DNA from: Lepidodermella squamata
Lineage: Eukaryota > Animalia > Gastrotricha
Direction: 5' to 3'
Assembly: GCA_047495785.1 (NCBI GenBank)
Contig: JBLDXI010000011.1
Coordinates: 1,054,001-1,118,000 of the forward strand
Length of the DNA: 64,000 bases
Numbering within the stretch: the stretch's first letter is position 1; each line of letters starts with the position of its first letter. The notes beneath the pieces were generated by a model. That model saw only the letters and a list, made by a program, of their open reading frames with translations, was not told where the DNA came from and made no database searches. This document shows positions 18,651 through 43,486 of this stretch, in pieces. The position numbers were made by a program, and so were the translations under genes.

Positions 18651-19196
18651 ATGGACTACGGTTATGCTAGCCAACCAAGCGGGCCCGTGTACTGCTACGG
18701 CTCTATCGACGCTCCCGTCGAGCCCTGTCTATCCCGTGTCGACGACAGTCAACGTTGGAGGAAGAGGCGTCGCCCTGATTGGTGGAAACCAGATATCCTG
18801 GCTCAGCTACAAGAAGAAGACCCTGCTTACCGCTTAGTTCTTTCACTTTTGAAAATTAACAACTTTGAACACATCGATTATTTAGCAGCTCACTCCACTC
18901 ACTGGGCCGAAGTCGTTGTCGCGCAATCAGCTGATGACATGTTCCAAGCCGACGATGGCATCTCGTTTATCACGGTTCATGACCGATTGATACCCCGAGC
19001 CTGCCTGCTGGTTCCTGATCGACTCAAATTCGAGGTCTGGTCTCGACACCACGTCACTTCGAACGGTCGACATCTCGACGCACGCAAAGCGACAAGCCGC
19101 GTTCGCACTCGCTATAGGTACCCGCTAATGTACAGTGACATCCGTCGCCGTTGTCAAGCATGTCAGAAATGCTGCGAAAGTTTCGTTTCGTTTTAA
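18651..19196 (+). pseudogene. Gypsy-type integrase zinc-binding (H2C2) domain fragment
   Basis: LAQLQEEDP...LLVPDRLKFEVWSRHH...GRHLDARKAT.R.R.RYRYPLMYSDIRRRCQACQKC. The 3' end runs into the tandem array at ~19187. Confidence 0.7.
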
Positions 19197-19249
19197 AGAC
19201 TATTCTTAGCATTAACGGCTGTTTTAGGTCACATTTTGAATGATTAGCA

Positions 19250-20048
19250 CTAGGAATTGTTTCCTGTGCATTTTTCGACTGTTAGTCCGTAGACACTGAC
19301 AGTTGAGGTTGCCGGCACCGCGCTCGCTGGAGTAGAGCCGAGAGCCTGGCAACAGGCGCCGTAATTGGCAAAAGAATAGGTTGTGGGCGAAACCTTGATT
19401 GTCTGTTCAAAGTTTCCCGGTCATACAGAGCTGTATTGTAAATTGCATATTATGATCTTACCACACCGCTTGTTAGAAGGACGTCAGATGAACCACCAGC
19501 TGTATGCGGAAAACGGACGCAGTTGCCGGTCGTGGCCGTGGCAGATGTCCTAGTAACCAGATAGGGCGTCGAGGAAGCGGCACCGATGCAAACCGTTGCA
19601 TAGGCTACCGGCGGGCCCGTGATAACAACTTGCTCGTATTTAATGTTAGCTGTAGTTGGAGTTGTCGCGGCACAGCATAGGGCAAAGGTAGTGTACGTGT
19701 TCGGGGTTGGTGTTACTTGCTGAAAAGCAATTGATAAGTCAAAGAGATGTCGCTATCAGGTTTTCCATACTGTTGCGCCAGTTAATTGGGTACAGGCTCC
19801 CGCGTTATCGATGCAGAATTTCAAATTCGTCTGGCTGGTACCCGACCCGCCTTGGGTCGTTATTTGGCAAAGATTGTAGACGGGCTAGATAATACGATTG
19901 AAATTAATGTTTCACAACAACGACATCCTGTTGGGGTAAGAGCTAGAACTAGACATCTAATCCGCCATGGCACAAATAATGAATGCGAAATAAATTACAG
20001 TTGTTAAGCAGCTTTTAGTGCTATCGGTACACGCCTGGGTTGAGGTAA
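19250..20048 (-). pseudogene. 5'-truncated copy of the secreted-protein gene (lacks start codon and signal peptide)
   Basis: Exons 2-4 are intact. Exon 1 is cut at ...TGAGGTAA|ATTATTAATTGG, a deletion junction with AA microhomology. Confidence 0.85.
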
Positions 20049-20239
20049 ATTATTAATTGGATCCTGCTCCTCCCTTCAGTCGTAGTAGGAGCGCCGGGTG
20101 AAACCCAGAACTAGAAATAACGTACATGTAAACGTTACCCCATTTATATCTGAAAAATTGTAAAATGATGTGTAGAATACGAACAAAATCGGGGGAAGTT
20201 GAAATAACATTGTGTGACCACTTAAAAGTCCGATCCAAT

Positions 20240-20473
20240 GCGCACGCTGATTGGTCAATCGATCGTTGCTATGACTCCCGGATGAAACGTTCTGCTGTGC
20301 GATGCTTAAGATTTTTTGCAACAAGTGTTTTTTGCCGCAGCAATTTGCCACGATTAATATGGAGTTTAAGGTCATTTTTTCATAAATATAAAATAATTTA
20401 TTAGTGGATCGCACGACGGAAATGTTTCATTCCGGAGTCATTAGCAACGATAAATTGACCAATCAGCGTGCGC
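20240..20473. mobile_element. MITE with ~50-bp imperfect TIRs, repeated in every array unit
   Basis: GCGCACGCTGATTGGTCAAT..CGTTGCTATGACTCC / GGAGTCATTAGCAACG..ATTGACCAATCAGCGTGCGC. Same core as the MITE at 43708-44010. Confidence 0.7.
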
Positions 20474-21039
20474 GCCAAGGTTCAACTTACCAGTGGTTCC
20501 ACAATGTAAGGAAAAGGATGTAGTTGTTTGTTCTGAAGATTTAACCGTGATATCGGATCAATTTTCCATTGCATCCAAAGCGTTTGTGCAGAGTGCGCAC
20601 TGTGGCAGGTTTTGCTTCCGCAATAATCATGCTAGTACCGTCAATAAAAGTAGCTTGAACCGGTTCGAAGTATATCATTTGAAACAGCATACAAGTACTG
20701 CCAAGAATGCTCATTACGCCGCAACTCGATATTTTGCGATATTTTAGCCTACGACGCTATGAAGCTATTAACCTGCAAAGCCGAAGTTTCCAAAATGTTT
20801 AAATTTATCCGGCGTTACATTATTCAAAATATTTTTATTTGCAATCGTTGCTTTCAACAAATCAATGTAACATATTTCCTGTTCAACAACGGAATGCGAC
20901 AATTTTTGTAATCAAATGATAAGATGGGCAAAGGCTTCGTCACAAAAAGCATATTTGCATTCGATCTTATCATTTGTTCGTTTTAAAGACTATTCTTAGC
21001 ATTAACGGCTGTTTTAGGTCACATTTTGAATGATTAGCA

Positions 21040-21998
21040 CTAGGAATTGTTTCCTGTGCATTTTTCGACTGTTAGTCCGTAGACACTGACAGTTGAGGTT
21101 GCCGGCACCGCGCTCGCTGGAGTAGAGCCGAGAGCCTGGCAACAGGCGCCGTAATTGGCAAAAGAATAGGTTGTGGGCGAAACCTTGATTGTCTGTTCAA
21201 AGTTTCCCGGTCATACAGAGCTGTATTGTAAATTGCATATTATGATCTTACCACACCGCTTGTTAGAAGGACGTCAGATGAACCACCAGCTGTATGCGGA
21301 AAACGGACGCAGTTGCCGGTCGTGGCCGTGGCAGATGTCCCAGTAACCAGATAGGGCGTCGAGGAAGCGGCACCGATGCAAACCGTTGCATAGGCTACCG
21401 GCGGGCCCGTGATAACAACTTGCTCGTATTTAATGTTAGCTGTAGTTGGAGTTGTCGCGGCACAGCATAGGGCAAAGGTAGTGTACGTGTTCGGGGTTGG
21501 TGTTACTTGCTGAAAAGCAATTGATAAGTCAAAGAGATGTCGCTATCAGGTTTTCCATACTGTTGCGCCAGTTAATTGGGTACAGGCTCCCGCGTTATCG
21601 ATGCAGAATTTCAAATTCGTCTGGCTGGTACCCGACCCGCCTTGGGTCGTTATTTGGCAAAGATTGTAGACGGGCTAGATAATACGATTGAAATTAATGT
21701 TTCACAACAACGACATCCTGTTGGGGTAAGAGCTAGAACTAGACATCTAATCCGCCATGGCACAAATAATGAATGCGAAATAAATTACAGTTGTTAAGCA
21801 GCTTTTAGTGCTATCGGTACACGCCTGGGTTGAGGTAACGCATTGATTCGGTGATGAACAGCTTGAACTTGACGACGAACAGGACTGACCAGACGGGCAA
21901 GACGACGAGCCGGTCGGGCAAGGTGTCGAAGTCGATGCTGGGCATGCGTTTGCGGCTGCAATAACAGCTAAGAGAGCTGTGAATCGCGAGAGGATCAT
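21040..21998 (-). CDS. Secreted Cys/Thr-rich protein, array copy 1 (intact, 244 aa)
   Basis: Same 4-exon structure as 627-1580; signal peptide MILSRFTALLAVIAAANA; TAG at 21042-21040. Confidence 0.85.
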
Positions 21999-22877
21999 TT
22001 TATATTGAGAGCTACGTCAATTCCAATAACGATAGATTGAAGTTTAGAGGGTATACACTAGCGCTTTGAATAATATGGTGGTTTTAACAGCTAACACATC
22101 CCGGCTGCGACTGATATATTCCAACCGGTATTGGACAGGACACGATGCATACTGCAAAGAAACCGAGCGATGCCTTATTTTATCCAAAGCAAATAGCTGT
22201 AAAGCGTCTTTCCTATTCTGAAATGAATATCCCCTGATTTGTAGCTGATAAATAGCCGCGGACTTTCCAGCTAGCAGTATCACGTTGTGACGATGCGAGT
22301 AGTGTTGACAGGATGGAATGTCCGCACGTTACTCAAGCGTCGCACTTTGTCCACCTCTTTGATAAATTTCGGTAAGAATTTCCTTTTTCTATGCAACTTT
22401 TCTCGATTGGCGAAAAACTTGCAACGTTAATGATGGCTTCGGTTACTGCTATGTGGGGGAAACGCTATGCTGATGATACTGTACCCAGTACGTCATTAGC
22501 GAAATCACCCAAGGTACTGGTGAAAGCTTTGGTCATATTCTTTCATCAATATAAAACTTTATTGATGGAACATGAAATGCGATTGATTCTATGATTGAAC
22601 ATAAATATAAATTATCGCACTTTCGCTATATCGGGATTTCAGGAAATCGTAAAATTAAACTAAACTACGACATCGGGATAACCCTAGCCGAATCTTGATT
22701 AAGGATCGCACATGATCGCGCATTATCTCAAATTGCATCGATGTGCGATTGACGAGACTATAAAAAAGATAGATACGCATGCAAGCAGAATGAATTAATT
22801 TCTGCTGCAGAAATCGATGCTCATTCGCATCGAAATCTCTCCGCTTAAAAGCGTACAAAGCATACACTCTTTCACGG

Positions 22878-23412
22878 TTAGATTTTTGCCCTTCGGTCTA
22901 TTCACCGTACTACTTCACAGATATTAACAAGCTGGAGGCGGTTCAAGCCCGGTTCACTAAACGCCTTTTGTATAGAAGTGACTACTATTCATCGATTGAC
23001 GGTGCCTCGTATTATGAAAGATGTAAAAAACTAGGACTGTGTCCTCTTGAAATCAGACGCTTTCAACATGACCTTGCGCTATGCCATAAAATGTACCTAG
23101 GCTGTGTGGATGCTAGCTTTTCTACATTCTTCAAAATATCTTCAAATCCCCGTTCACCAGCTCATGCTGTTGTCATGAAACGATTTGAACATCCGAGCTC
23201 TCAGTTCAGCTTTACAAGGCGTGTGCGCGCAGCGTGGAACCGGCTGCCCTCAACTATTGTCAATAATTCTCATACTGTGTTTCTGCGATATCTTAAATCT
23301 AAGTCAGATGAACTAGTGGATTTTACGAACTCTGAGGTGAGGCGCCGAGAACTAACCTATTGCTAACTGCTGTGAAACAAAATGCATAATAAAATCAGAA
23401 TCAGAATCGGAA
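22878..23412 (+). mobile_element. CR1-type LINE 3' fragment (end of ORF2 plus tail), repeated in each full array unit (ORFs at 26344, 29727, 33110, 36493, 39869)
   Basis: VYSPY..DINKLEAVQARFTKR...SYYERCKKLGLCPLEIRRFQHDL...FTRRVRAAWNRLP, followed by AATAAA and an (ATCAGA)n tail. Confidence 0.85.
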
Positions 23413-24422
23413 TTATGACGTTTTAGCAGCAATTATTAATTGGATCCTGCTCCTCCCTTCAGTCGTAGTAGGAGCGCCGGGTGAAACCCAGAACTAGAAA
23501 TAACGTACATGTAAACGTTACCCCATTTATATCTGAAAAATTGTAAAATGATGTGTAGAATACGAACAAAATCGGGGGAAGTTGAAATAACATTGTGTGA
23601 CCACTTAAAAGTCCGATCCAATGCGCACGCTGATTGGTCAATCGATCGTTGCTATGACTCCCGGATGAAACGTTCTGCTGTGCGATGCTTAAGATTTTTT
23701 GCAACAAGTGTTTTTTGCCGCAGCAATTTGCCACGATTAATATGGAGTTTAAGGTCATTTTTTCATAAATATAAAATAATTTATTAGTGGATCGCACGAC
23801 GGAAATGTTTCATTCCGGAGTCATTAGCAACGATAAATTGACCAATCAGCGTGCGCGCCAAGGTTCAACTTACCAGTGGTTCCACAATGTAAGGAAAAGG
23901 ATGTAGTTGTTTGTTCTGAAGATTTAACCGTGATATCGGATCAATTTTCCATTGCATCCAAAGCGTTTGTGCAGAGTGCGCACTGTGGCAGGTTTTGCTT
24001 CCGCAATAATCATGCTAGTACCGTCAATAAAAGTAGCTTGAACCGGTTCGAAGTATATCATTTGAAACAGCATACAAGTACTGCCAAGAATGCTCATTAC
24101 GCCGCAACTCGATATTTTGCGATATTTTAGCCTACGACGCTATGAAGCTATTAACCTGCAAAGCCGAAGTTTCCAAAATGTTTAAATTTATCCGGCGTTA
24201 CATTATTCAAAATATTTTTATTTGCAATCGTTGCTTTCAACAAATCAATGTAACATATTTCCTGTTCAACAACGGAATGCGACAATTTTTGTAATCAAAT
24301 GATAAGATGGGCAAAGGCTTCGTCACAAAAAGCATATTTGCATTCGATCTTATCATTTGTTCGTTTTAAAGACTATTCTTAGCATTAACGGCTGTTTTAG
24401 GTCACATTTTGAATGATTAGCA

Positions 24423-25374
24423 CTAGGAATTGTTTCCTGTGCATTTTTCGACTGTTAGTCCGTAGACACTGACAGTTGAGGTTGCCGGCACCGCGCTCGC
24501 TGGAGTAGAGCCGAGAGCCTGGCAACAGGCGCCGTAATTGGCAAAAGAATAGGTTGTGGGCGAAACCTTGATTGTCTGTTCAAAGTTTCCCGGTCATACA
24601 GAGCTGTATTGTAAATTGCATATTATGATCTTACCACACCGCTTGTTAGAAGGACGAACCACCAGCTGTATGCGGAGAACGGGCGCAGTTGCCGGTCGTG
24701 GCCGTGGCAGATGTCCCAGTAACCAGATAGGGCGTCGAGGAAGCGGCACCGATGCAAACCGTTGCATAGGCTACCGGCGGGCCCGTGATAACAACTTGCT
24801 CGTATTTAATGTTAGCTGTAGTTGGAGTTGTCGCGGCACAGCATAGGGCAAAGGTAGTGTACGTGTTCGGGGTTGGTGTTACTTGCTGAAAAGCAATTGA
24901 TAAGTCAAAGAGATGTCGCTATCAGGTTTTCCATACTGTTGCGCCAGTTAATTGGGTACAGGCTCCCGCGTTATCGATGCAGAATTTCAAATTCGTCTGG
25001 CTGGTACCCGACCCGCCTTGGGTCGTTATTTGGCAAAGATTGTAGACGGGCTAGATAATACGATTGAAATTAATGTTTCACAACAACGACATCCTGTTGG
25101 GGTAAGAGCTAGAACTAGACATCTAATCCGCCATGGCACAAATAATGAATGCGAAATAAATTACAGTTGTTAAGCAGCTTTTAGTGCTATCGGTACACGC
25201 CTGGGTTGAGGTAACGCATTGATTCGGTGATGAACAGCTTGAACTTGACGACGAACAGGACTGACCAGACGGGCAAGACGACGAGCCGGTCGGGCAAGGT
25301 GTCGAAGTCGATGCTGGGCATGCGTTTGCGGCTGCAATAACAGCTAAGAGAGCTGTGAATCGCGAGAGGATCAT
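24423..25374 (-). pseudogene. Array copy 2: 7-bp deletion in exon 3, premature stop (~187 aa)
   Basis: AGGACGAACC at ~24651-24660 instead of AGGACGTCAGATGAACC. The minus strand reads ...GGT GGT TCG TCC TTC TAA. Confidence 0.8.
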
Positions 25375-27798
25375 TTTATATTGAGAGCTACGTCAATTCC
25401 AATAACGATAGATTGAAGTTTAGAGGGTATACACTAGCGCTTTGAATAATATGGTGGTTTTAACAGCTAACACATCCCGGCTGCGACTGATATATTCCAA
25501 CCGGTATTGGACAGGACACGATGCATACTGCAAAGAAACCGAGCGATGCCTTATTTTATCCAAAGCAAATAGCTGTAAAGCGTCTTTCCTATTCTGAAAT
25601 GAATATCCCCTGATTTGTAGCTGATAAATAGCCGCGGACTTTCCAGCTAGCAGTATCACGTTGTGACGATGCGAGTAGTGTTGACAGGATGGAATGTCCG
25701 CACGTTACTCAAGCGTCGCACTTTGTCCACCTCTTTGATAAATTTCGGTAAGAATTTCCTTTTTCTATGCAACTTTTCTCGATTGGCGAAAAACTTGCAA
25801 CGTTAATGATGGCTTCGGTTACTGCTATGTGGGGGAAACGCTATGCTGATGATACTGTACCCAGTACGTCATTAGCGAAATCACCCAAGGTACTGGTGAA
25901 AGCTTTGGTCATATTCTTTCATCAATATAAAACTTTATTGATGGAACATGAAATGCGATTGATTCTATGATTGAACATAAATATAAATTATCGCACTTTC
26001 GCTATATCGGGATTTCAGGAAATCGTAAAATTAAACTAAACTACGACATCGGGATAACCCTAGCCGAATCTTGATTAAGGATCGCACATGATCGCGCATT
26101 ATCTCAAATTGCATCGATGTGCGATTGACGAGACTATAAAAAAGATAGATACGCATGCAAGCAGAATGAATTAATTTCTGCTGCAGAAATCGATGCTCAT
26201 TCGCATCGAAATCTCTCCGCTTAAAAGCGTACAAAGCATACACTCTTTCACGGTTAGATTTTTGCCCTTCGGTCTATTCACCGTACTACTTCACAGACAT
26301 TAACAAGCTGGAGGCGGTTCAAGCCCGGTTCACTAAACGCCTTTTGTATAGAAGTGACTACTATTCATCGATTGACGGTGCCTCGTATTATGAAAGATGT
26401 AAAAAACTAGGACTGTGTCCTCTTGAAATCAGACGCTTTCAACATGACCTTGCGCTATGCCATAAAATGTACCTAGGCTGTGTGGATGCTAGCTTTTCTA
26501 CATTCTTCAAAATATCTTCAAATCCCCGTTCACCAGCTCATGCTGTTGTCATGAAACGATTTGAACATCCGAGCTCTCAGTTCAGCTTTACAAGGCGTGT
26601 GCGCGCAGCGTGGAACCGGCTGCCCTCAACTATTGTCAATAATTCTCATACTGTGTTTCTGCGATATCTTAAATCTAAGTCAGATGAACTAGTGGATTTT
26701 ACGAACTCTGAGGTGAGGCGCCGAGAACTAACCTATTGCTAACTGCTGTGAAACAAAATGCATAATAAAATCAGAATCAGAATCGGAATTATGACGTTTT
26801 AGCAGCAATTATTAATTGGATCCTGCTCCTCCCTTCAGTCGTAGTAGGAGCGCCGGGTGAAACCCAGAACTAGAAATAACGTACATGTAAACGTTACCTC
26901 ATTTATATCTGAAAAATTGTAAAATGATGTGTAGAATACGAACAAAATCGGGGGAAGTTGAAATAACATTGTGTGACCACTTAAAAGTCCGATCCAATGC
27001 GCACGCTGATTGGTCAATCGATCGTTGCTATGACTCCCGGATGAAACGTTCTGCTGTGCGATGCTTAAGATTTTTTGCAACAAGTGTTTTTTGCCGCAGC
27101 AATTTGCCACGATTAATATGGAGTTTAAGGTCATTTTTTCATAAATATAAAATAATTTATTAGTGGATCGCACGACGGAAATGTTTCATTCCGGAGTCAT
27201 TAGCAACGATAAATTGACCAATCAGCGTGCGCGCCAAGGTTCAACTTACCAGTGGTTCCACAATGTAAGGAAAAGGATGTAGTTGTTTGTTCTGAAGATT
27301 TAACCGTGATATCGGATCGATTTTCCATTGCATCCAAAGCGTTTGTGCAGAGTGCGCACTGTGGCAGGTTTTGCTTCCGCAATAATCATGCTAGTACCGT
27401 CAATAAAAGTAGCTTGAACCGGTTCGAAGTATATCATTTGAAACAGCATACAAGTACTGCCAAGAATGTTCATTACGCCGCAACTCGATATTTTGCGATA
27501 TTTTAGCCTACGACGCTATGAAGCTATTAACCTGCAAAGCCGAAGTTTCCAAAATGTTTAAATTTATCCGGCGTTACATTATTCAAAATATTTTTATTTG
27601 CAATCGTTGCTTTCAACAAATCAATGTAACATATTTCCTGTTCAACAACGGAATGCGACAATTTTTGTAATCAAATGATAAGATGGGCAAAGGCTTCGTC
27701 ACAAAAAGCATATTTGCATTCGATCTTATCATTTGTTCGTTTTAAAGACTATTCTTAGCATTAACGGCTGTTTTAGGTCACATTTTGAATGATTAGCA

Positions 27799-28757
27799 CT
27801 AGGAATTGTTTCCTGTGCATTTTTCGACTGTTAGTCCGTAGACACTGACAGTTGAGGTTGCCGGCACCGCGCTCGCTGGAGTAGAGCCGAGAGCCTGGCA
27901 ACAGGCGCCGTAATTGGCAAAAGAATAGGTTGTGGGCGAAACCTTGATTGTCTGTTCAAAGTTTCCCGGTCATACAGAGCTGTATTGTAAATTGCATATT
28001 ATGATCTTACCACACCGCTTGTTAGAAGGACGTCAGATGAACCACCAGCTGTATGCGGAAAACGGACGCAGTTGCCGGTCGTGGCCGTGGCAGATGTCCC
28101 AGTAACCAGATAGGGCGTCGAGGAAGCGGCACCGATGCAAACCGTTGCATAGGCTACCGGCGGGCCCGTGATAACAACTTGCTCGTATTTAATGTTAGCT
28201 GTAGTTGGAGTTGTCGCGGCACAGCATAGGGCAAAGGTAGTGTACGTGTTCGGGGTTGGTGTTACTTGCTGAAAAGCAATTGATAAGTCAAAGAGATGTC
28301 GCTATCAGGTTTTCCATACTGTTGCGCCAGTTAATTGGGTACAGGCTCCCGCGTTATCGATGCAGAATTTCAAATTCGTCTGGCTGGTACCCGACCCGCC
28401 TTGGGTCGTTATTTGGCAAAGATTGTAGACGGGCTAGATAATACGATTGAAATTAATGTTTCACAACAACGACATCCTGTTGGGGTAAGAGCTAGAACTA
28501 GACATCTAATCCGCCATGGCACAAATAATGAATGCGAAATAAATTACAGTTGTTAAGCAGCTTTTAGTGCTATCGGTACACGCCTGGGTTGAGGTAACGC
28601 ATTGATTCGGTGATGAACAGCTTGAACTTGACGACGAACAGGACTGACCAGACGGGCAAGACGACGAGCCGGTCGGGCAAGGTGTCGAAGTCGATGCTGG
28701 GCATGCGTTTGCGGCTGCAATAACAGCTAAGAGAGCTGTGAATCGCGAGAGGATCAT
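27799..28757 (-). CDS. Secreted Cys/Thr-rich protein, array copy 3 (intact)
   Basis: 959-bp span with the same structure as copy 1. Confidence 0.85.
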
Positions 28758-32140: not shown

Positions 32141-34564
32141 TTTATATTGAGAGCTACGTCAATTCCAATAACGATAGATTGAAGTTTAGAGGGTATACAC
32201 TAGCGCTTTGAATAATATGGTGGTTTTAACAGCTAACACATCCCGGCTGCGACTGATATATTCCAACCGGTATTGGACAGGACACGATGCATACTGCAAA
32301 GAAACCGAGCGATGCCTTATTTTATCCAAAGCAAATAGCTGTAAAGCGTCTTTCCTATTCTGAAATGAATATCCCCTGATTTGTAGCTGATAAATAGCCG
32401 CGGACTTTCCAGCTAGCAGTATCACGTTGTGACGATGCGAGTAGTGTTGACAGGATGGAATGTCCGCACGTTACTCAAGCGTCGCACTTTGTCCACCTCT
32501 TTGATAAATTTCGGTAAGAATTTCCTTTTTCTATGCAACTTTTCTCGATTGGCCAAAAACTTGCAACGTTAATGATGGCTTCGGTTACTGCTATGTGGGG
32601 GAAACGCTATGCTGATGATACTGTACCCAGTACGTCATTAGCGAAATCACCCAAGGTACTGGTGAAAGCTTTGGTCATATTCTTTCATCAATATAAAACT
32701 TTATTGATGGAACATGAAATGCGATTGATTCTATGATTGAACATAAATATAAATTATCGCACTTTCGCTATATCGGGATTTCAGGAAATCGTAAAATTAA
32801 ACTAAACTACGACATCGGGATAACCCTAGCCGAATCTTGATTAAGGATCGCACATGATCGCGCATTATCTCAAATTGCATCGATGTGCGATTGACGAGAC
32901 TATAAAAAAGATAGATACGCATGCAAGCAGAATGAATTAATTTCTGCTGCAGAAATCGATGCTCATTCGCATCGAAATCTCTCCGCTTAAAAGCGTACAA
33001 AGCATACACTCTTTCACGGTTAGATTTTTGCCCTTCGGTCTATTCACCGTACTACTTCACAGATATTAACAAGCTGGAGGCGGTTCAAGCCCGGTTCACT
33101 AAACGCCTTTTGTATAGAAGTGACTACTATTCATCGATTGACGGTGCCTCGTATTATGAAAGATGTAAAAAACTAGGACTGTGTCCTCTTGAAATCAGAC
33201 GCTTTCAACATGACCTTGCGCTATGCCATAAAATGTACCTAGGCTGTGTGGATGCTAGCTTTTCTACATTCTTCAAAATATCTTCAAATCCCCGTTCACC
33301 AGCTCATGCTGTTGTCATGAAACGATTTGAACATCCGAGCTCTCAGTTCAGCTTTACAAGGCGTGTGCGCGCAGCGTGGAACCGGCTGCCCTCAACTATT
33401 GTCAATAATTCTCATACTGTGTTTCTGCGATATCTTAAATCTAAGTCAGATGAACTAGTGGATTTTACGAACTCTGAGGTGAGGCGCCGAGAACTAACCT
33501 ATTGCTAACTGCTGTGAAACAAAATGCATAATAAAATCAGAATCAGAATCGGAATTATGACGTTTTAGCAGCAATTATTAATTGGATCCTGCTCCTCCCT
33601 TCAGTCGTAGTAGGAGCGCCGGGTGAAACCCAGAACTAGAAATAACGTACATGTAAACGTTACCCCATTTATATCTGAAAAATTGTAAAATGATGTGTAG
33701 AATACGAACAAAATCGGGGGAAGTTGAAATAACATTGTGTGACCACTTAAAAGTCCGATCCAATGCGCACGCTGATTGGTCAATCGATCGTTGCTATGAC
33801 TCCCGGATGAAACGTTCTGCTGTGCGATGCTTAAGATTTTTTGCAACAAGTGTTTTTTGCCGCAGCAATTTGCCACGATTAATATGGAGTTTAAGGTCAT
33901 TTTTTCATAAATATAAAATAATTTATTAGTGGATCGCACGACGGAAATGTTTCATTCCGGAGTCATTAGCAACGATAAATTGACCAATCAGCGTGCGCGC
34001 CAAGGTTCAACTTACCAGTGGTTCCACAATGTAAGGAAAAGGATGTAGTTGTTTGTTCTGAAGATTTAACCGTGATATCGGATCGATTTTCCATTGCATC
34101 CAAAGCGTTTGTGCAGAGTGCACACTGTGGCAGGTTTTGCTTCCGCAATAATCATGCTAGTACCGTCAATAAAAGTAGCTTGAACCGGTTCGAAGTATAT
34201 CATTTGAAACAGCATACAAGTACTGCCAAGAATGTTCATTACGCCGCAACTCGATATTTTGCGATATTTTAGCCTACGACGCTATGAAGCTATTAACCTG
34301 CAAAGCCGAAGTTTCCAAAATGTTTAAATTTATCCGGCGTTACATTATTCAAAATATTTTTATTTGCAATCGTTGCTTTCAACAAATCAATGTAACATAT
34401 TTCCTGTTCAACAACGGAATGCGACAATTTTTGTAATCAAATGATAAGATGGGCAAAGGCTTCGTCACAAAAAGCATATTTGCATTCGATCTTATCATTT
34501 GTTCGTTTTAAAGACTATTCTTAGCATTAACGGCTGTTTTAGGTCACATTTTGAATGATTAGCA

Positions 34565-35523
34565 CTAGGAATTGTTTCCTGTGCATTTTTCGACTGTTAG
34601 TCCGTAGACACTGACAGTTGAGGTTGCCGGCACCGCGCTCGCTGGAGTAGAGCCGAGAGCCTGGCAACAGGCGCCGTAATTGGCAAAAGAATAGGTTGTG
34701 GGCGAAACCTTGATTGTCTGTTCAAAGTTTCCCGGTCATACAGAGCTGTATTGTAAATTGCATATTATGATCTTACCACACCGCTTGTTAGAAGGACGTC
34801 AGATGAACCACCAGCTGTATGCGGAAAACGGACGCAGTTGCCGGTCGTGGCCGTGGCAGATGTCCCAGTAACCAGATAGGGCGTCGAGGAAGCGGCACCG
34901 ATGCAAACCGTTGCATAGGCTACCGGCGGGCCCGTGATAACAACTTGCTCGTATTTAATGTTAGCTGTAGTTGGAGTTGTCGCGGCACAGCATAGGGCAA
35001 AGGTAGTGTACGTGTTCGGGGTTGGTGTTACTTGCTGAAAAGCAATTGATAAGTCAAAGAGATGTCGCTATCAGGTTTTCCATACTGTTGCGCCAGTTAA
35101 TTGGGTACAGGCTCCCGCGTTATCGATGCAGAATTTCAAATTCGTCTGGCTGGTACCCGACCCGCCTTGGGTCGTTATTTGGCAAAGATTGTAGACGGGC
35201 TAGATAATACGATTGAAATTAATGTTTCACAACAACGACATCCTGTTGGGGTAAGAGCTAGAACTAGACATCTAATCCGCCATGGCACAAATAATGAATG
35301 CGAAATAAATTACAGTTGTTAAGCAGCTTTTAGTGCTATCGGTACACGCCTGGGTTGAGGTAACGCATTGATTCGGTGATGAACAGCTTGAACTTGACGA
35401 CGAACAGGACTGACCAGACGGGCAAGACGACGAGCCGGTCGGGCAAGGTGTCGAAGTCGATGCTGGGCATGCGTTTGCGGCTGCAATAACAGCTAAGAGA
35501 GCTGTGAATCGCGAGAGGATCAT
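34565..35523 (-). CDS. Secreted Cys/Thr-rich protein, array copy 5 (intact)
   Basis: 959-bp span with the same structure as copy 1. Confidence 0.85.
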
Positions 35524-37947
35524 TTTATATTGAGAGCTACGTCAATTCCAATAACGATAGATTGAAGTTTAGAGGGTATACACTAGCGCTTTGAATAATA
35601 TGGTGGTTTTAACAGCTAACACATCCCGGCTGCGACTGATATATTCCAACCGGTATTGGACAGGACACGATGCATACTGCAAAGAAACCGAGCGATGCCT
35701 TATTTTATCCAAAGCAAATAGCTGTAAAGCGTCTTTCCTATTCTGAAATGAATATCCCCTGATTTGTAGCTGATAAATAGCCGCGGACTTTCCAGCTAGC
35801 AGTATCACGTTGTGACGATGCGAGTAGTGTTGACAGGATGGAATGTCCGCACGTTACTCAAGCGTCGCACTTTGTCCACCTCTTTGATAAATTTCGGTAA
35901 GAATTTCCTTTTTCTATGCAACTTTTCTCGATTGGCCAAAAACTTGCAACGTTAATGATGGCTTCGGTTACTGCTATGTGGGGGAAACGCTATGCTGATG
36001 ATACTGTACCCAGTACGTCATTAGCGAAATCACCCAAGGTACTGGTGAAAGCTTTGGTCATATTCTTTCATCAATATAAAACTTTATTGATGGAACATGA
36101 AATGCGATTGATTCTATGATTGAACATAAATATAAATTATCGCACTTTCGCTATATCGGGATTTCAGGAAATCGTAAAATTAAACTAAACTACGACATCG
36201 GGATAACCCTAGCCGAATCTTGATTAAGGATCGCACATGATCGCGCATTATCTCAAATTGCATCGATGTGCGATTGACGAGACTATAAAAAAGATAGATA
36301 CGCATGCAAGCAGAATGAATTAATTTCTGCTGCAGAAATCGATGCTCATTCGCATCGAAATCTCTCCGCTTAAAAGCGTACAAAGCATACACTCTTTCAC
36401 GGTTAGATTTTTGCCCTTCGGTCTATTCACCGTACTACTTCACAGATATTAACAAGCTGGAGGCGGTTCAAGCCCGGTTCACTAAACGCCTTTTGTATAG
36501 AAGTGACTACTATTCATCGATTGACGGTGCCTCGTATTATGAAAGATGTAAAAAACTAGGACTGTGTCCTCTTGAAATCAGACGCTTTCAACATGACCTT
36601 GCGCTATGCCATAAAATGTACCTAGGCTGTGTGGATGCTAGCTTTTCTACATTCTTCAAAATATCTTCAAATCCCCGTTCACCAGCTCATGCTGTTGTCA
36701 TGAAACGATTTGAACATCCGAGCTCTCAGTTCAGCTTTACAAGGCGTGTGCGCGCAGCGTGGAACCGGCTGCCCTCAACTATTGTCAATAATTCTCATAC
36801 TGTGTTTCTGCGATATCTTAAATCTAAGTCAGATGAACTAGTGGATTTTACGAACTCTGAGGTGAGGCGCCGAGAACTAACCTATTGCTAACTGCTGTGA
36901 AACAAAATGCATAATAAAATCAGAATCAGAATCGGAATTATGACGTTTTAGCAGCAATTATTAATTGGATCCTGCTCCTCCCTTCAGTCGTAGTAGGAGC
37001 GCCGGGTGAAACCCAGAACTAGAAATAACGTACATGTAAACGTTACCTCATTTATATCTGAAAAATTGTAAAATGATGTGTAGAATACGAACAAAATCGG
37101 GGGAAGTTGAAATAACATTGTGTGACCACTTAAAAGTCCGATCCAATGCGCACGCTGATTGGTCAATCGATCGTTGCTATGACTCCCGGATGAAACGTTC
37201 TGCTGTGCGATGCTTAAGATTTTTTGCAACAAGTGTTTTTTGCCGCAGCAATTTGCCACGATTAATATGGAGTTTAAGGTCATTTTTTCATAAATATAAA
37301 ATAATTTATTAGTGGATCGCACGACGGAAATGTTTCATTCCGGAGTCATTAGCAACGATAAATTGACCAATCAGCGTGCGCGCCAAGGTTCAACTTACCA
37401 GTCGTTCCACAATGTAAGGAAAAGGATGTAGTTGTTTGTTCTGAAGATTTAACCGTGATATCGGATCGATTTTCCATTGCATCCAAAGCGTTTGTGCAGA
37501 GTGCGCACTGTGGCAGGTTTTGCTTCCGCAATAATCATGCTAGTACCGTCAATAAAAGTAGCTTGAACCGGTTCGAAGTATATCATTTGAAACAGCATAC
37601 AAGTACTGCCAAGAATGCTCATTACGCCGCAACTCGATATTTTGCGATATTTTAGCCTACGACGCTATGAAGCTATTAACCTGCAAAGCCGAAGTTTCCA
37701 AAATGTTTAAATTTATCCGGCGTTACATTATTCAAAATATTTTTATTTGCAATCGTTGCTTTCAACAAATCAATGTAACATATTTCCTGTTCAACAACGG
37801 AATGCGACAATTTTTGTAATCAAATGATAAGATGGGCAAAGGCTTCGTCACAAAAAGCATATTTGCATTCGATCTTATCATTTGTTCGTTTTAAAGACTA
37901 TTCTTAGCATTAACGGCTGTTTTAGGTCACATTTTGAATGATTAGCA

Positions 37948-38899
37948 CTAGGAATTGTTTCCTGTGCATTTTTCGACTGTTAGTCCGTAGACACTGACAG
38001 TTGAGGTTGCCGGCACTGCGCTCGCTGGAGTAGAGCCGAGAGCCTGGCAACAGGCGCCGTAATTGGCAAAAGAATAGGTTGTGGGCGAAACCTTGATTGT
38101 CTGTTCAAAGTTTCCCGGTCATACAGAGCTGTATTGTAAATTGCATATTATGATCTTACCACACCGCTTGTTAGAAGGACGAACCACCAGCTGTATGCGG
38201 AGAACGGACGCAGTTGCCGGTCGTGGCCGTGGCAGATGTCCCAGTAACCAGATAGGGCGTCGAGGAAGCGGCACCGATGCAAACCGTTGCATAGGCTACC
38301 GGCGGGCCCGTGATAACAACTTGCTCGTATTTAATGTTAGCTGTAGTTGGAGTTGTCGCGGCACAGCATAGGGCAAAGGTAGTGTACGTGTTCGGGGTTG
38401 GTGTTACTTGCTGAAAAGCAATTGATAAGTCAAAGAGATGTCGCTATCAGGTTTTCCATACTGTTGCGCCAGTTAATTGGGTACAGGCTCCCGCGTTATC
38501 GATGCAGAATTTCAAATTCGTCTGGCTGGTACCCGACCCGCCTTGGGTCGTTATTTGGCAAAGATTGTAGACGGGCTAGATAATACGATTGAAATTAATG
38601 TTTCACAACAACGACATCCTGTTGGGGTAAGAGCTAGAACTAGACATCTAATCCGCCATGGCACAAATAATGAATGCGAAATAAATTACAGTTGTTAAGC
38701 AGCTTTTAGTGCTATCGGTACACGCCTGGGTTGAGGTAACGCATTGATTCGGTGATGAACAGCTTGAACTTGACGACGAACAGGACTGACCAGACGGGCA
38801 AGACGACGAGCCGGTCGGGCAAGGTGTCGAAGTCGATGCTGGGCATGCGTTTGCGGCTGCAATAACAGCTAAGAGAGCTGTGAATCGCGAGAGGATCAT
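37948..38899 (-). pseudogene. Array copy 6: same 7-bp exon-3 deletion as copy 2
   Basis: AAGGACGAACCACC at ~38175-38188, with the same linked GCGGAGAACGG variant as copy 2. Confidence 0.8.
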
Positions 38900-41333
38900 T
38901 TTATATTGAGAGCTACGTCAATTCCAATAACGATAGATTGAAGTTTAGAGGGTATACACTAGCGCTTTGAATAATATGGTGGTTTTAACAGCTAACACAT
39001 CCCGGCTGCGACTGATATATTCCAACCGGTATTGGACAGGACACGATGCATACTGCAAAGAAACCGAGCGATGCCTTATTTTATCCAAAGCAAATAGCTG
39101 TAAAGCGTCTTTCCTATTCTGAAATGAATATCCCCTGATTTGTAGCTGATAAATAGCCGCGGACTTTCCAGCTAGCAGTATCACGTTGTGACGATGCGAG
39201 TAGTGTTGACAGGATGGAATGTCCGCACGTTACTCAAGCGTCGCACTTTGTCCACCTCTTTGATAAATTTCGGTAAGAATTTCCTTTTTCTATGCAACTT
39301 TTCTCGATTGGCCAAAAACTTGCAACGTTAATGATGGCTTCGGTTACTGCTATGTGGGGGAAACGCTATGCTGATGATACTGTACCCAGTACGTCATTAG
39401 CGAAATCACCCAAGGTACTGGTGAAAGCTTTGGTCATATTCTTTCATCAATATAAAACTTTATTGATGGAACATGAAATGCGATTGATTCTATGATTGAA
39501 CATAAATATAAATTATCGCACTTTCGCTATATCGGGATTTCAGGAAATCGTAAAATTAAACTAAACTACGACATCGGGATAACCCTAGCCGAATCTTGAT
39601 TAAGGATCGCACATGATCGCGCATTATCTCAAATTGCATCGATGTGCGATTGACGAGACTATAAAAAAGATAGATACGCATGCAAGCAGAATGAATTAAT
39701 TTCTGCTGCAGAAATCGATGCTCATTCGCATCGAAATCTCTCCGCTTAAAAGCGTACAAAGCATACACTCTTTCACGGTTAGATTTTTGCCCTTCGGTCT
39801 ATTCACCGTACTACTTCACAGATATTAACAAGCTGGAGGCGGTTCAAGCCCGGTTCACTAAACGCCTTTTGTATAGAAGTGACTACTATTCATCGATTGA
39901 CGGTGCCTCGTATTATGAAAGATGTAAAAAACTAGGACTGTGTCCTCTTGAAATCAGACGCTTTCAACATGACCTTGCGCTATGCCATAAAATGTACCTA
40001 GGCTGTGTGGATGCTAGCTTTTCTACATTCTTCAAAATATCTTCAAATCCCCGTTCACCAGCTCATGCTGTTGTCATGAAACGATTTGAACATCCGAGCT
40101 CTCAGTTCAGCTTTACAAGGCGTGTGCGCGCAGCGTGGAACCGGCTGCCCTCAACTATTGTCAATAATTCTCATACTGTGTTTCTGCGATATCTTAAATC
40201 TAAGTCAGATGAACTAGTGGATTTTACGAACTCTGAGGTGAGGCGCCGAGAACTAACCTATTGCTAACTGTTGTGAAACAAAATGCATAATAAAATCAGA
40301 ATCAGAATCGGAATTATGACGTTTTAGCAGCAATTATTAATTGGATCCTGCTCCTCCCTTCAGTCGTAGTAGGAGCGCCGGGTGAAACCCAGAACTAGAA
40401 ATAACGTACATGTAAACGTTACCTCATTTATATCTGAAAAATTGTAAAATGATGTGTAGAATACGAACAAAATCGGGGGAAGTTGAAATAACATTGTGTG
40501 ACCACTTAAAAGTCCGATCCAATGCGCACGCTGATTGGTCAATCGATCGTTGCTATGACTCCCGGATGAAACGTTCTGCTGTGCGATGCTTAAGATTTTT
40601 TGCAACAAGTGTTTTTTGCCGCAGCAATTTGCCACGATTAATATGGAGTTTAAGGTCATTTTTTCATAAATATAAAATAATTTATTAGTGGATCGCACGA
40701 CGGAAATGTTTCATTCCGGAGTCATTAGCAACGATAAATTGACCAATCAGCGTGCGCGCCAAGGTTCAACTTACCAGTCGTTCCACAATGTAAGGAAAAG
40801 GATGTAGTTGTTTGTTCTGAAGATTTAACCGTGATATCGGATCAATTTTCCATTGCATCCAAAGCGTTTGTGCAGAGTGCGCACTGTGGCAGGTTTTGCT
40901 TCCGCAATAATCATGCTAGTACCGTCAATAAAAGTAGCTTGAACCGGTTCGAAGTATATCATTTGAAACAGCATACAAGTACTGCCAAGAATGTTCATTA
41001 CGCCGCAACTCGATATTTTGCGATATTTTAACCTACGACGCTATGAAGCTATTAACCTGCAAAGCCGAAGTTTCCAAAATGTTTAAATTTATCCGGCGTT
41101 ACATTATTCAAAATATTTTTATTTAGCAATAGAAACTAGAAACTGTCAAAATAGCTTTAATTTTATTGAGTCGGACTGCACGTTCAGGCTCACAGCAATC
41201 TTTGTCTGCTTGATGAGTAGACTTTCGTGGACCAAGCAGTCCAACCTGTTGCGGCACTTGCGTAATACTTTGAAGTGAGCATTGATGTCAAAGCTATCAG
41301 GCAGTTTGTGTGTGGCCAGATGTTTGCCAATTG

Positions 41334-42819
41334 GTGACATTCTTCCAAAGGCCTTGGCAGAACAAGTAAGGAGCAAAGGTGCTAGGCTAGCTCACCTCCG
41401 CGGGCTCCCGAAGATTCACAAGAATCCAACTGCTATGAGACCGATCTTGTCGGCGACTGGCACCTACAACTTCAAATTGGCTACATGGCTGGATCAACTT
41501 CTCAAGCCACTCGCTTCGAATGACAGGATGATACCAGATATCCTGAATTTCATCGAGAAAGAAGTGAACGGTTTGAAACTGAATCCTGGAGAAATTCTGG
41601 TCTCGTACGACGTGACTTCACTCTTCACGAACGTTCCGGTTGCCGAAACCATCGATTATCTCGTGGACAAAGCCTTCAGAGGCGGATGGCTCAACCGAAA
41701 ATATAAACTCAAGCTGACTAAGGACAACCTGCGAACGTTGCTAAATCTAGCAGTCAAGTACCAGCTGTTCATTTACAATGGTTCTTTATACATCCAAGTC
41801 GAAGGCGTCGCGATGGGCTCGCCACTTGGACCACTAATGGCCAATGCCTTCATGAGCATGCTGGAAGAACGCCTGAGCAAGAGCAAACAACTGCCCGCTT
41901 TCTATCGTCGGTTTGTTGACGATACTCTGACTATCATGAAAGGCGTAACTGCAGCGAATCATTTCCTTGAAGTACTCAACGGTCTTCATCCGTCGGTGAA
42001 ATTCACCATGGAAATTGAACAGAACAACCAGATCGCTTTCTGCGGTGCCCTCGTGAAGACAATTGGGTCGGTTCTGAAGACTGAGGTGTACCACAAACTA
42101 ACGGACACCGGGCTGTTGATGCACTTTCAGAGTCACACAGACACCAAGTATAAGACGTGCCTCATCAAGACCATGCTGTATCGCGCCTACCGGCTTACAG
42201 TGAATGGCTCGGATTCAGCAGGGAAGTTGATCATCTGCGTAAAACATTTTTGAATCTTCAATACCCTTTAGCCATGTTTGAGAAGCTGTTGGCATCATTT
42301 GTTGACAAAGTCTACCCCAATGGTATAAAAACTGAGGAAACGAAGATCGAACCTGTACGCTTTGTATTACCCTACAAAGACGGGAAAAGTGCTCGACAAG
42401 TCAAGATGAGGCTCAACGATCTTTCTGGAAAACTCCGAGTGGCTGTTCAGGCCATGTTCACAAGCCGGAAAATCAACGAAAATTTCGGAGCGAAGGAGAT
42501 CAAGCCCGAACTCGTAAGCCGCCAGTGCGTCGTATATCGTTTTTCATGTGGCCAGTGTGACGCTGGCTATGTCGGGATGACCACGCGGCACCTACATCAA
42601 CGAGTCGAGGAACACAAGCTCGCTTCGAGTTCAATTGGCAAACATCTGGCCACACACAAACTGCCTGATAGCTTTGACATCAATGCTCACTTCAAAGTAT
42701 TACGCAAGTGCCGCAACAGGTGGGACTGCTTGGTCCACGAAAGTCTACTCATCAAGCAGACAAAGATTGCTGTGAGCCTGAACGTGCAGTCCGACTCAAT
42801 AAAATTAAAGCTATTTTGA
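41334..42819 (+). pseudogene. PLE reverse transcriptase-GIY-YIG polyprotein, 5'-truncated, with one frameshift near 42190-42200
   Basis: ORFs 41282-42253 and 42157-42819 overlap; the homology switches frame after MLYRAYRL. Confidence 0.9.
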
Positions 42820-42908
42820 CAGTTTCTAGTTTCTATTTTCATCCTGATACCTTGTTGTGCTTTCGTCTTTTACTGTAATAATTTCTTGTTGTGTTTTCTT
42901 TTGTTGTA

Positions 42909-42946
42909 GGCCTGATGATGGTCCACGCAAGGACCGAAACGTTGCC
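42909..42946 (+). ncRNA. Minimal type I hammerhead ribozyme motif in the PLE 3' repeat (pLTR)
   Basis: GGC-CUGAUGA-U-GGUCC(acgcaa)GGACC-GAAA-CGUU-GCC: conserved core, 5-bp stem II, palindromic ACGU in place of stem III and a 3-bp stem I. AATAAA follows within 10 nt. Confidence 0.8.
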
Positions 42947-43222
42947 CGTTATAAATAAAGTTGTAATCAGAAGCAACTAGGTGTCGCTTTCTTTTTTGGT
43001 TAATCTGTACCCGACTCGGGTTTTCATTTCCTCACTTCAACAAATCAATGTAACATATTTCCTGTTTAACAACGGAATGCGACAATTTTTGTAATCAAAT
43101 GATAAGATGGGCAAAGGCTTCGTCACAAAAAGCATATTTGCATTCGATCTTATCATTTGTTCGTTTTAAAGACTATTCTTAGCATTAACGGCTGTTTTAG
43201 GTCACATTTTGAATGATTAGCA

Positions 43223-43486
43223 CTAGGAATTGTTTCCTGTGCATTTTTCGACTGTTAGTCCGTAGACACTGACAGTTGAGGTTGCCGGCACCGCGCTCGC
43301 TGGAGTAGAGCCGAGAGCCTGGCAACAGGCGCCGTAATTGGCAAAAGAATAGGTTGTGGGCGAAACCTTGATTGTCTGTTCAAAGTTTCCCGGTCATACA
43401 GAGCTGTATTGTAAATTGCATATTATGATCTTACCACACCGCTTGTTAGAAGGACGTCAGATGAACCACCAGCTGTATGCGGAAAA
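43223..43486 (-). pseudogene. 3' fragment of the secreted-protein gene (exon 4 and end of exon 3); right edge of the array
   Basis: Homology stops abruptly at CTGTATGCGGAAAA|GAGTGAAG. Confidence 0.85.

Follow-up and report, generated by a model that had tools for sequence, protein, structure and literature searches.

The arrays of antifreeze-protein genes in fish are the classic case of gene amplification for dose: near-identical repeats of a few kilobases lie head-to-tail, each with one gene for a small secreted protein. Here we describe an array of similar layout in a 64,000-nt stretch of the genome of the gastrotrich Lepidodermella squamata (hereafter the window; all positions refer to it), whose predicted protein differs from antifreeze proteins in showing no visible ice-binding repeat pattern. 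At the protein level there is also a likeness to fungal hydrophobins, which rests on the order of cysteines: from Cys101 onward the array protein reads C, CC, C, C, CC, C, and both are small, secreted, low in charge and disulfide-rich. However, the spacings of the array protein are far larger (21, 27, 22, 35 and 26 residues), ten cysteines lie further upstream, and its source is an animal. Hydrophobin (PF01185 or PF06766) was rejected as its identity: full-length homologues gave no Pfam match even at E ≤ 10, no fold matched, and the spacing is far outside the usual range.

Invertebrates have lineage-specific families of secreted, Cys-rich proteins, such as MgCRP-I of mussels (PMC4558851). Like the family of the array gene, these combine a signal peptide with a conserved Cys framework and variable loops, and their genes are clustered or in tandem, confined to one lineage and undescribed in function. 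The two differ in that there is no sequence, profile or fold relationship between them, that the array protein is larger (226 aa when mature, with 18 Cys) and that its family is very large, with arrays of at least 99.6% identity. The mate-recognition protein MMR-B of Brachionus rotifers is a secreted surface glycoprotein with in-protein repeats of ∼87–92 aa, predicted to be helical; it is encoded by several near-identical gene copies that undergo concerted evolution, and its description mentions no cysteines (PMC3495898). It shares with the array protein a secreted nature, near-identical gene copies and a microscopic invertebrate as its source. Compared by description, the repeated thing in our array is instead the whole gene, and its protein is Cys-rich and predicted to be mainly β-strand. 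Identity with MMR-B was rejected on the 18 cysteines and the β-rich models, set against the published description (PMC3495898).

Results

Blastn of one unit (27736–31118) against the window, together with a repeat search that returned spacings of 3383 and 3376, revealed a 3,383-bp unit repeated head-to-tail between 19187 and 43486 (no strand assigned). The array comprises seven units and a stub. Five units are uninterrupted: U1 (20977–24359), U2 (24360–27735), U3 (27736–31118, the blastn query and our reference), U4 (31119–34501) and U5 (34502–37884). U6 (37885–41130 and 43036–43159) is split by a 1.9-kb retroelement, and U0 (19187–20976) joins unit positions 1–862 to 2455–3383 across a 1,593-bp internal deletion (unit 863–2454). 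The stub, U7 (43160–43486, minus strand), consists of the first 327 bp of the unit only, which cover exon 4 plus the final 52 nt of exon 3 of the gene described below; the array's end falls within exon 3. The units are in-register direct repeats, each full unit spanning the gene from start codon to stop codon. The unit copy number is that of a single assembly, in which a 1.95-Mb contig encloses the array with unique flanks on both sides. Tandem Repeats Finder (TRF) overlooked the array solely because its longest period is 500.

All array units are 99.5–100% identical to U3 by blastn. Pairwise divergence is 0.06–0.42%, or 1–10 substitutions per pair, and the seven long units are all mutually distinct; they vary at ∼15 sites and, in addition, by a shared 7-bp deletion and a single 1-bp insertion. 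U2 and U6, which lie four units apart, have in common the 7-bp deletion and an A-to-G change at unit position 325; other sites are common to U1 and U2, to U5 and U6, to U3 and U4, and to U0, U1 and U6. This mosaic of variants among non-adjacent units is a sign of exchange between them, as looked for in a cluster shaped by unequal crossing-over.

Each unit carries a gene, or part of one, on the minus strand. In U3 the reference gene (27799–28757) has four exons (E1, 28757–28548; E2, 28433–28320; E3, 28268–28011; E4, 27951–27799) that encode 244 codons and are separated by three GT-AG phase-0 introns of 114, 51 and 59 nt. The six-frame list of open reading frames shows it only as an 83-aa read-through of exon 1, an illustration of how ORF-based scans are blind to entire families of short-intron genes. 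The copy in U1 (21040–21998; E1, 21789–21998; E2, 21561–21674; E3, 21252–21509; E4, 21040–21192) is intact and encodes the same 244-aa protein, as does the intact copy in U5 (34565–35523); that in U4 (31182–32140), also intact, has the single change V151L. Four array copies are thus intact, three of them with identical proteins.

The other four of the eight array entries are broken. The U2 gene (24423–25374, minus strand) is frameshifted by the loss of 7 bp from exon 3 (unit 297–303), directly after which comes a stop, and F-to-S and V-to-A changes affect the conserved CVRFPHT motif; U6 (37948–38899, minus strand) has the same deletion and the F-to-S change. The gene in U0 (minus strand, within 19187–20976) is truncated: it keeps exons 4, 3 and 2 but only the final 50 nt of exon 1, without a start codon. 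U7 is the stub. Outside the array, a solo paralog (627–1580, minus strand; E1, 1371–1580; E2, 1149–1262; E3, 839–1096; E4, 627–779) is intact at 244 aa and identical to the array protein at 228 of 244 residues. A sequence-only reading of the window had proposed a near-identical 3.38-kb repeat, a four-exon gene that the ORF track misses, and a census of five intact, two frameshifted and two truncated copies. Our analysis reproduces all three, with 3,383-bp units that diverge by 0.06–0.42%, a 244-codon model with three GT-AG phase-0 introns, and copies that are intact (U1, U3, U4, U5 and the solo paralog), frameshifted (U2 and U6) or truncated (U0 and U7).

Several lines of evidence indicate that the predicted four-exon gene is real. 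We compared the array gene with the three paralogs closest to it, each ∼10% diverged from it. All four genes keep 244 codons and GT-AG introns, and dN/dS across the six pairs is 0.03–0.19, values that point to maintenance of the family by purifying selection. The array gene differs from each of the three paralogs by ∼38–40 synonymous and 21–22 non-synonymous changes; the nearest paralogs are separated from it by a dS of 0.07–0.08 in exons 2–4 and by 12–15% in introns. The layout of E1 to E4 is found again in paralogs of 36–59% identity, and 149 of the 150 listed exon-3 matches in the genome are free of internal stops. Finally, one homologue from another organism (P0002; 227 aa, intron-less, on a 929-bp public contig) is colinear with the four exons.

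Between the array gene and the solo paralogs, exon 1 has diverged far more than exons 2–4, and homology ends ∼15 bp ahead of the ATG. For this reason the promoter of the array gene may differ from that of the solo copies. A search for a donor of exon 1 returned nothing nearer than the three solo copies, at 81%.

Read by eye, the N-terminus of the predicted protein has one basic residue, an 11-residue hydrophobic core and A-N-A ahead of the first cysteine, a signal-peptide layout common to the array protein, P0002 and the paralogs. The C-terminus is polar, without a hydrophobic tail or membrane anchor, and an extracellular location of the putative product follows from the sequence. The protein contains 18 Cys and 34% Ser+Thr, and its 226-aa mature form has 11 charged residues. 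The signal peptide is followed by a Ser/Thr-rich stretch of ∼50 residues with one Cys per 6–8 residues and then by a C-terminal part of ∼170 residues, predicted to be mainly β-strand, in which another ten Cys are arranged as C, C, C, CC, C, C, CC, C. These features are most consistent with a secreted, disulfide-locked and probably O-glycosylated extracellular protein. We left its fold unassigned because the AlphaFold models are only moderately confident (mean pLDDT 62–63), a deeper alignment of 103 rows changing the value from 61.7 to 62.6 only.

Family alignments outline an exon-3 domain of ∼80 aa with the motifs F-x2-CC, N-I-x-Y-E, C-x-G, T-P-Y and C-V-R-F-P-H-T, in which CC, C, C and P are invariant. 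A shorter module, F-x2-CC ... Y-G ... C, comes after it, and exons 3 and 4 in the window contain all of these motifs. An internal duplication that would relate exon 3 to exon 4 was left as unproven, the overlap found by hhalign being limited to a common motif of 19 columns (probability 70%).

We queried sequence and structure collections with single exons, a paralog ORF, P0002 and full-length homologues; the joined exons served for length, identity and dN/dS. Neither the individual exons nor the full-length homologues matched Pfam above threshold. Granulin (PF00396) was rejected for exon 1, which scored 16.4 bits (E = 0.01) against a cut-off of 20.9 and has only single Cys, with no CC doublets. 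A word-indexed search of 5.8 billion proteins with the 234-aa paralog ORF and P0002 returned nothing or P0002 itself. In a profile search of 1.84 billion representatives, P0002 was the only true match, four others being spurious repeat proteins. Searches of the ESM Atlas gave no usable match, and a profile search of the PDB gave none. For two AlphaFold models, Foldseek and VIA-align reached best Z scores of 3.9 and 3.7, which is noise level, and a metagenome scan with the CVRFPHTA motif produced 38 chance matches and zero relatives.

P0002 is the single relative among 15 billion public proteins, with zero in Pfam and the PDB, and the family to which the gene belongs resembles no described one. 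Judged by these searches, it would be restricted to the lineage of the array gene. The silence of the public collection on this point is nevertheless uninformative, because control genes of the same genome are missing there too: neither of two HSP70 ORFs is present, and for HSC70 the best match is 79% identical.

Within the genome, the exon-3 core matches at least 150 places on many contigs. On the contig of the array, two other subfamilies, one lying 200 kb upstream of it and one 90 kb downstream, each have an array of their own with 99.6–100% identity and units of 2,514 bp and roughly 2.5 kb.

The unit also contains mobile DNA. Every full unit carries the 5′-truncated 3′ end of a young LINE-type retrotransposon (29580–30172 in U3, plus strand; unit 1845–2437). 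This fragment is 98–99% identical to other genomic copies, and the dispersed copies, up to 99% identical, vary at their 5′ ends and have a common 3′ end; its 132-aa tail ORF is similar to an ORF at 48904–49446. Every full unit further contains a ∼300-bp dispersed repeat with an internal inverted repeat (30338–30654 in U3, no strand assigned; unit 2603–2919), of which more than 15 copies at 80–86% identity occur on many contigs, both strands being matched in part.

The retroelement fragment that interrupts U6 at unit position 3252/3260 (41131–43035, plus strand; 1.9 kb) matches PF00078 (E = 9.7e-9) and has ORFs at 41282–42253 (reverse transcriptase) and 42157–42819. The left flank of the array is a retroelement integrase fragment (18651–19196, plus strand; PF17921 Integrase_H2C2, E = 4.3e-9), cut off exactly at the array start. 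Around the array, the integrase fragment and the insertion bearing a reverse transcriptase are accompanied by hAT, LINE and Copia elements.

Discussion

We consider it likely that the array arose by recent head-to-tail amplification of a real secreted-protein gene, now in birth-and-death turnover, from a lineage family under purifying selection. The sequence-only reading had called the gene an unrecognised secreted-protein gene, and dN/dS, the layout of the paralogs, the colinear P0002 and the signal-peptide features all agree with it. Its view that the amplification is recent is upheld by unit differences of 0.06–0.42% set against a paralog dS of 0.07–0.08, and by the 98–99% identity between the unit's LINE fragment and its other genomic copies; the region proved to be as rich in transposable elements as it had stated, with integrase, reverse transcriptase, hAT, LINE and Copia sequences. 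As a whole, that reading is partly supported; what is left of it, the interpretation of the array as amplification for dosage of an abundantly needed product, is no more than a plausible candidate.

The data show a very recent head-to-tail amplification of a 3.38-kb stretch of chromosome, which took along a working four-exon gene, its upstream DNA, a 5′-truncated LINE copy and a small dispersed repeat. In the mechanism that we propose, unequal crossing-over and gene conversion among units would have given rise to the array and would continue to reshuffle it. The state of the copies suggests birth-and-death turnover: four are good, two have a frameshift in common, two are truncated, and one unit was struck by a retroelement. 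Four intact copies would raise the dose of the product, a benefit at which we can only guess. Given the arrays in other subfamilies and a family of at least 150 members, recurrent unequal crossing-over with birth-and-death turnover explains the array no less well than selection for dose. Likewise, that four of the eight array entries are non-functional is as compatible with relaxed or neutral turnover as with dose selection.

It is possible, though on balance rather unlikely, that the array is a neutral by-product of unequal crossing-over in a repeat-rich, family-dense region, with a copy number that drifts and extra copies that are useless and decaying. In its favor, two of the six full-length genes have the same frameshift and a change in an almost invariant residue, two more entries are truncated, and the surroundings are rich in transposable elements. 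Moreover, two nearby subfamilies have similar young arrays, and the tendency to form them therefore lies in the locus or the family, not in the array gene. However, three intact copies encode an identical protein and the fourth has one conservative difference, the family as a whole is under strong constraint, and coding differences within the array are too few for any selection test.

That the array is an artefact, either a one- or two-copy locus over-expanded in assembly or a phi29 concatemer of a small circle assembled as an array, is improbable. Near-identical units of 3.4 kb are difficult to assemble, and the assembly derives from a single animal whose DNA underwent multiple-displacement amplification and was sequenced as 13.4-kb HiFi reads; its authors note that highly repetitive blocks show 2.25x excess coverage (PMC11660948). 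Nevertheless, all seven long units are separated by clean substitutions rather than homopolymer errors, variants are common to subsets of units, and two units stand out, one by a 1.6-kb deletion and the other by an inserted 1.9-kb retroelement. A rolling-circle product would be expected as identical copies on a separate contig, whereas this array is embedded between unique flanks in a 1.95-Mb contig. A diploid has at most two alleles, and seven distinct units therefore mean at least four per haplotype.

We give very little credence to the unit being a mobile or captured-gene element that formed the array by a transposition-type mechanism instead of recombination: although it holds two transposable-element fragments and its left end adjoins a truncated integrase, the arrangement is strictly head-to-tail and in register, the unit has no terminal repeats or transposase of its own, only the 1-kb gene part recurs outside the array (three nearby sites, ∼90% identical), the fragments of transposable elements recur separately, and the complete 3.38-kb unit was absent elsewhere among the 39 of 341 candidates scored.

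As an event, a recent head-to-tail amplification of this gene is of an ordinary type in genome biology, the tandem duplication of a lineage-specific secreted-protein gene. The product of the gene may, at a guess, be part of a surface coat, a matrix, the cuticle, the egg envelope or an adhesive secretion. Going further, we put forward as a speculation, and a doubtful one, that the family could represent a novel extracellular domain rich in disulfides, one that originated and multiplied enormously in gastrotrichs. Its members would then serve as chief components of a phylum-typical structure, for instance cuticular scales, epicuticle, egg envelope or adhesive-tube glue, with young arrays tuning the output of single variants. 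The young arrays form a natural copy-number series for work on gene dosage. The molecular make-up of the gastrotrich surface and secretions is essentially undescribed, and a secreted family of at least 150 members, under selection and poor in relatives, is an obvious candidate for a lineage-defining extracellular material.

A tandem array of a four-exon gene for a predicted secreted protein

The array spans window positions 19187-43486 and consists of head-to-tail units of 3,383 bp, as established by blastn of one unit (U3, 27736-31118, our reference) against the window and by repeat finding. This bears out the near-identical 3.38-kb tandem repeat proposed in the sequence-only reading; Tandem Repeats Finder is silent on it because its maximum period is 500. 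The full units are U1 (20977-24359), U2 (24360-27735), U3, U4 (31119-34501) and U5 (34502-37884), with U2 measuring 3,376 bp owing to a 7-bp deletion that is also present in the interrupted U6. U0 (19187-20976) fuses unit positions 1-862 to 2455-3383 through a 1,593-bp deletion, U6 (37885-41130 and 43036-43159) is interrupted by a 1.9-kb insertion, and U7 (43160-43486) comprises only the initial 327 bp. The left end of the array interrupts a retroelement integrase ORF (PF17921), and the right end falls within exon 3. A multiple alignment of the units contains ~15 substitution sites and two indels, namely the 7-bp deletion of U2 and U6 and an insertion of 1 bp in U6. Pairwise divergence between units is 0.06-0.42%, and the seven long units are all mutually distinct. 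A perfect 25-bp tandem repeat of 6 copies lies at 17855-18005.

The minus strand of each unit carries a gene whose frame is opened by an ATG. Three-frame reading and the location of splice signals gave the same four-exon, 244-aa gene as had been read from the sequence alone, which the six-frame track indeed displays only as an 83-aa ORF, and copy-by-copy reading matched the earlier census exactly, with five intact, two frameshifted and two truncated copies including a solo copy outside the array. The exons comprise 70, 38, 86 and 50 codons (E1-E4; in U3, 28757-28548, 28433-28320, 28268-28011 and 27951-27799), separated by phase-0 GT-AG introns of 114, 51 and 59 nt; alternative splice acceptors lead to stops. 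U1, U3 and U5 are identical at the protein level and U4 is a V151L variant. The U2 and U6 genes have in common the 7-bp deletion, which lies in exon 3 and brings a stop immediately downstream, and a Phe-to-Ser change within the nearly invariant CVRFPHT motif. In U0 the gene has lost its start codon together with the greater part of exon 1, and of the U7 gene only exon 4 and 52 nt of exon 3 are left. The intact solo copy (627-1580, minus strand; exons 1371-1580, 1149-1262, 839-1096 and 627-779) is identical to the array protein at 228 of 244 residues, and its region (592-1548) aligns to the array unit with 92% DNA identity in blastn.

Selection, architecture and an outside homologue support a real gene

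Three independent lines of evidence indicate that the array gene is real. The gene part of the unit (unit positions 1-1037) has three paralogs at 89-90% DNA identity, namely the solo copy and two others on the same contig (C11:966808-967844 and C11:987069-988101), all of which keep the 244 codons and every GT-AG site. Each differs from the array gene by ~38-40 synonymous and 21-22 non-synonymous changes, giving a dN/dS of 0.17-0.19, against 0.00-0.05 among the three paralogs themselves; introns differ by 12-15%. We compared architecture by tblastn of the four exons: the E1-E2-E3-E4 order recurs in 18 more distant paralogous loci, some of which have lost introns, so that their exons are fused into open frames as long as 271 aa. 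The spliced model was searched exon by exon, the joined protein being used only for length, identity and dN/dS. Finally, a search of 1.84 billion representative proteins with a profile built from 37 exon-3 domains returned a sole true match (P0002, E = 1.3e-11). P0002 is 227 aa long, carries a signal peptide and is colinear with the four exons without interruption; the 929-bp contig that encodes it was assembled from public sequencing data of a single run. Its best match in this genome is only 43% identical; it is thus not encoded here and comes from another organism.

History of the array

Among the 39 of 341 candidate matches that were scored, the whole 3,383-bp unit occurs at a single genomic location, the array. 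Unit positions 1845-2437 (29580-30172 in U3) derive from the 3' part of a dispersed element whose genomic copies have a common 3' end and differing start points, as is characteristic of 5'-truncated LINE insertions; their identity of up to 99% marks the insertion as young. Copies of this LINE family occur on many contigs at 97-99% identity and show a gradation of 5' truncations, and the family was probably active recently. Unit positions 2603-2919 hold a ~300-bp repeat that recurs across many contigs with 80-86% identity.

The window contains further transposable elements. The fragment within U6 (41131-43035) is a 1.9-kb retroelement piece with a reverse-transcriptase ORF (PF00078) and a second, overlapping 220-aa ORF that has no Pfam match and could encode the endonuclease of a Penelope-like element. 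An apparently near-intact Copia-type polyprotein ORF of 1,145 aa (gag, integrase, RT) lies at 51587-55024, with a second gag/protease fragment on the opposite strand at 57967-58983. At 47001-47900 an ORF encodes a hAT dimerisation domain; it adjoins a LINE-type element (48904-50181) that carries a zinc-knuckle ORF and, at its tail, an ORF related to the LINE fragment in every array unit.

The likely order of events would begin with duplications that placed the gene at four loci in a 130-kb span (dS ~0.08), followed by insertion of transposable elements beside one gene copy and then by tandem amplification, with divergence of at most 0.4%. The 7-bp deletion would have arisen later and reached a second, non-adjacent unit, while U0 would have lost 1.6 kb and the reverse-transcriptase-bearing element would have entered U6. 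The variants are distributed as a mosaic among units, a pattern suggesting that unequal exchange or gene conversion is still going on. Exon 1 stands apart: comparing the array gene (28548-28757) with the solo copy (1371-1580), dS between array and solo copies is 0.8-1.0 and dN 0.13, against a dS of 0.08 in exons 2-4. Homology to the solo copies ends ~15 bp 5' of the ATG (unit position 1037), and a genome search found no exon-1 donor closer than the solo copies. Together, these observations suggest either that the array gene is a mosaic or that exon 1 diverges through slippage in its Ser-rich codons, and the array-gene promoter may differ from that of the solo copies.

One reading is that the amplification serves dosage; neutral birth-and-death turnover, which would explain the array instead, is a serious rival. 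We also asked whether the array could be an assembly or amplification artefact. The published L. squamata assembly (122 Mb, 157 contigs, 43% GC; GC in the window is mostly 0.39-0.48) was built with hifiasm from 13.4-kb HiFi reads of phi29-amplified DNA from one animal (PMC11660948). Read depth would be a poor copy-number test for that assembly, because coverage of highly repetitive blocks is reported to be in 2.25x excess; its gene models were deposited solely on figshare, and RNA-seq comprises one adult run (PMC11660948). A rolling-circle concatemer would be expected to have identical units and no chromosomal flanks, whereas the seven units are mutually distinct by clean substitutions, with variants common to subsets of units, two structural variants each private to one unit, and unique flanks within a 1.95-Mb contig. 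Altogether, it is very probable that the gene is real and was recently amplified in tandem.

A cysteine-rich product without a recognised fold

The signal peptide of the array protein reads as typical, with one Arg, an 11-residue hydrophobic core and A-N-A. The mature protein has 226 aa, 18 Cys, 34% Ser+Thr, 11 charged residues, one N-glycosylation sequon and a polar C-terminus; with its signal peptide, this C-terminus implies that it should be secreted and not anchored. Exon 1 encodes eight Cys at 6-8 residue spacing in a Ser/Thr/Pro-rich stretch, and exons 2-4 encode ten in the order C, C, C, CC, C, C, CC, C. Within the exon-3 domain, the core used for family searches, CC, C, C and P are invariant, and the motifs are F-x2-CC-A-A-T, N-I-x-Y-E, C-x-G, T-P-Y and C-V-R-F-P-H-T. 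The opening motif recurs in exon 4 (Y-x-F-x2-F-x2-CC), which terminates in Y-G-x4-5-C; hhalign links the two exons over 19 columns only (probability 70%).

Pfam gave no match for the family, the nearest being Granulin on exon 1 under the cut-off (E = 0.01), and neither a PDB profile search nor the ESM Atlas returned a relative. AlphaFold2 models of P0002 built from 43 and 103 aligned family rows reached mean pLDDT of 61.7 and 62.6, with 80-91 in the exon-3 core, and contain about ten strands, with short helices at the two CC motifs. Foldseek found no PDB match at E ≤ 0.001, and the best Z scores in exhaustive structural comparison (3.9 and 3.7) are noise. The models thus resemble no known fold that we could recognise, and their quality is too low to claim a new one.

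The Cys order resembles that of hydrophobins (C, CC, C, C, CC, C), but Cys spacing, profile search and fold search do not support membership. We likewise rejected a relation to the rotifer mate-recognition protein MMR-B, which is described as helical, with repeats within the protein and no cysteines mentioned (PMC3495898). The product is best described as a predicted secreted protein, rich in disulfides and in Ser/Thr, from a very large and lineage-restricted family that had not been described before; an extracellular structural or surface component is our tentative best guess.

A large family prone to recent amplification

Across the 121.2 Mb and 151 contigs searched, exon 3 has at least 150 matches, which are spread over more than 15 contigs and share 36-59% identity (150 scored of 277 candidates); 149 of the 150 are free of internal stops. 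A tree of 103 exon-3 domains shows deep diversification. The window gene belongs to a supported clade of 22 members, its nearest neighbours being the copies at C11:1.55-1.56 Mb, and P0002 sits on a long branch inside this genome's diversity. Matches are often paired with identical scores on different contigs, linking C11:1.75-1.95 Mb, C40 and C46 to C29:2.62-3.29 Mb (e.g., C11:1850620/C29:2676570, C40:368270/C29:2847619 and C46:82768/C29:3275838); such pairs may represent haplotigs left in the assembly, or else segmental duplications on a large scale in family-rich regions.

Beyond P0002, the family was not found in the public protein collection. Two intron-less HSP70 ORFs of this genome were likewise missing, and an HSC70-type ORF had a best match only 79% identical, so the collection includes neither L. 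squamata nor any close relative. The absence of the family therefore carries no weight for or against its expression, and its orphan status partly reflects poor sampling of its phylum.

Two other subfamilies on the same contig (loci L062-L071) also form young arrays. One, at C11:~858.6-874.1 kb, has a 2,514-bp unit in ~5.6 contiguous copies plus three partial sets (99.8-100% identity); the other, at C11:1.148-1.172 Mb, has ~2.5-kb units in both orientations (99.6-100% identity). Recent amplification is thus a habit of the family or the region and not a peculiarity of the array gene. The family is new; the amplification event is of a well-known kind.
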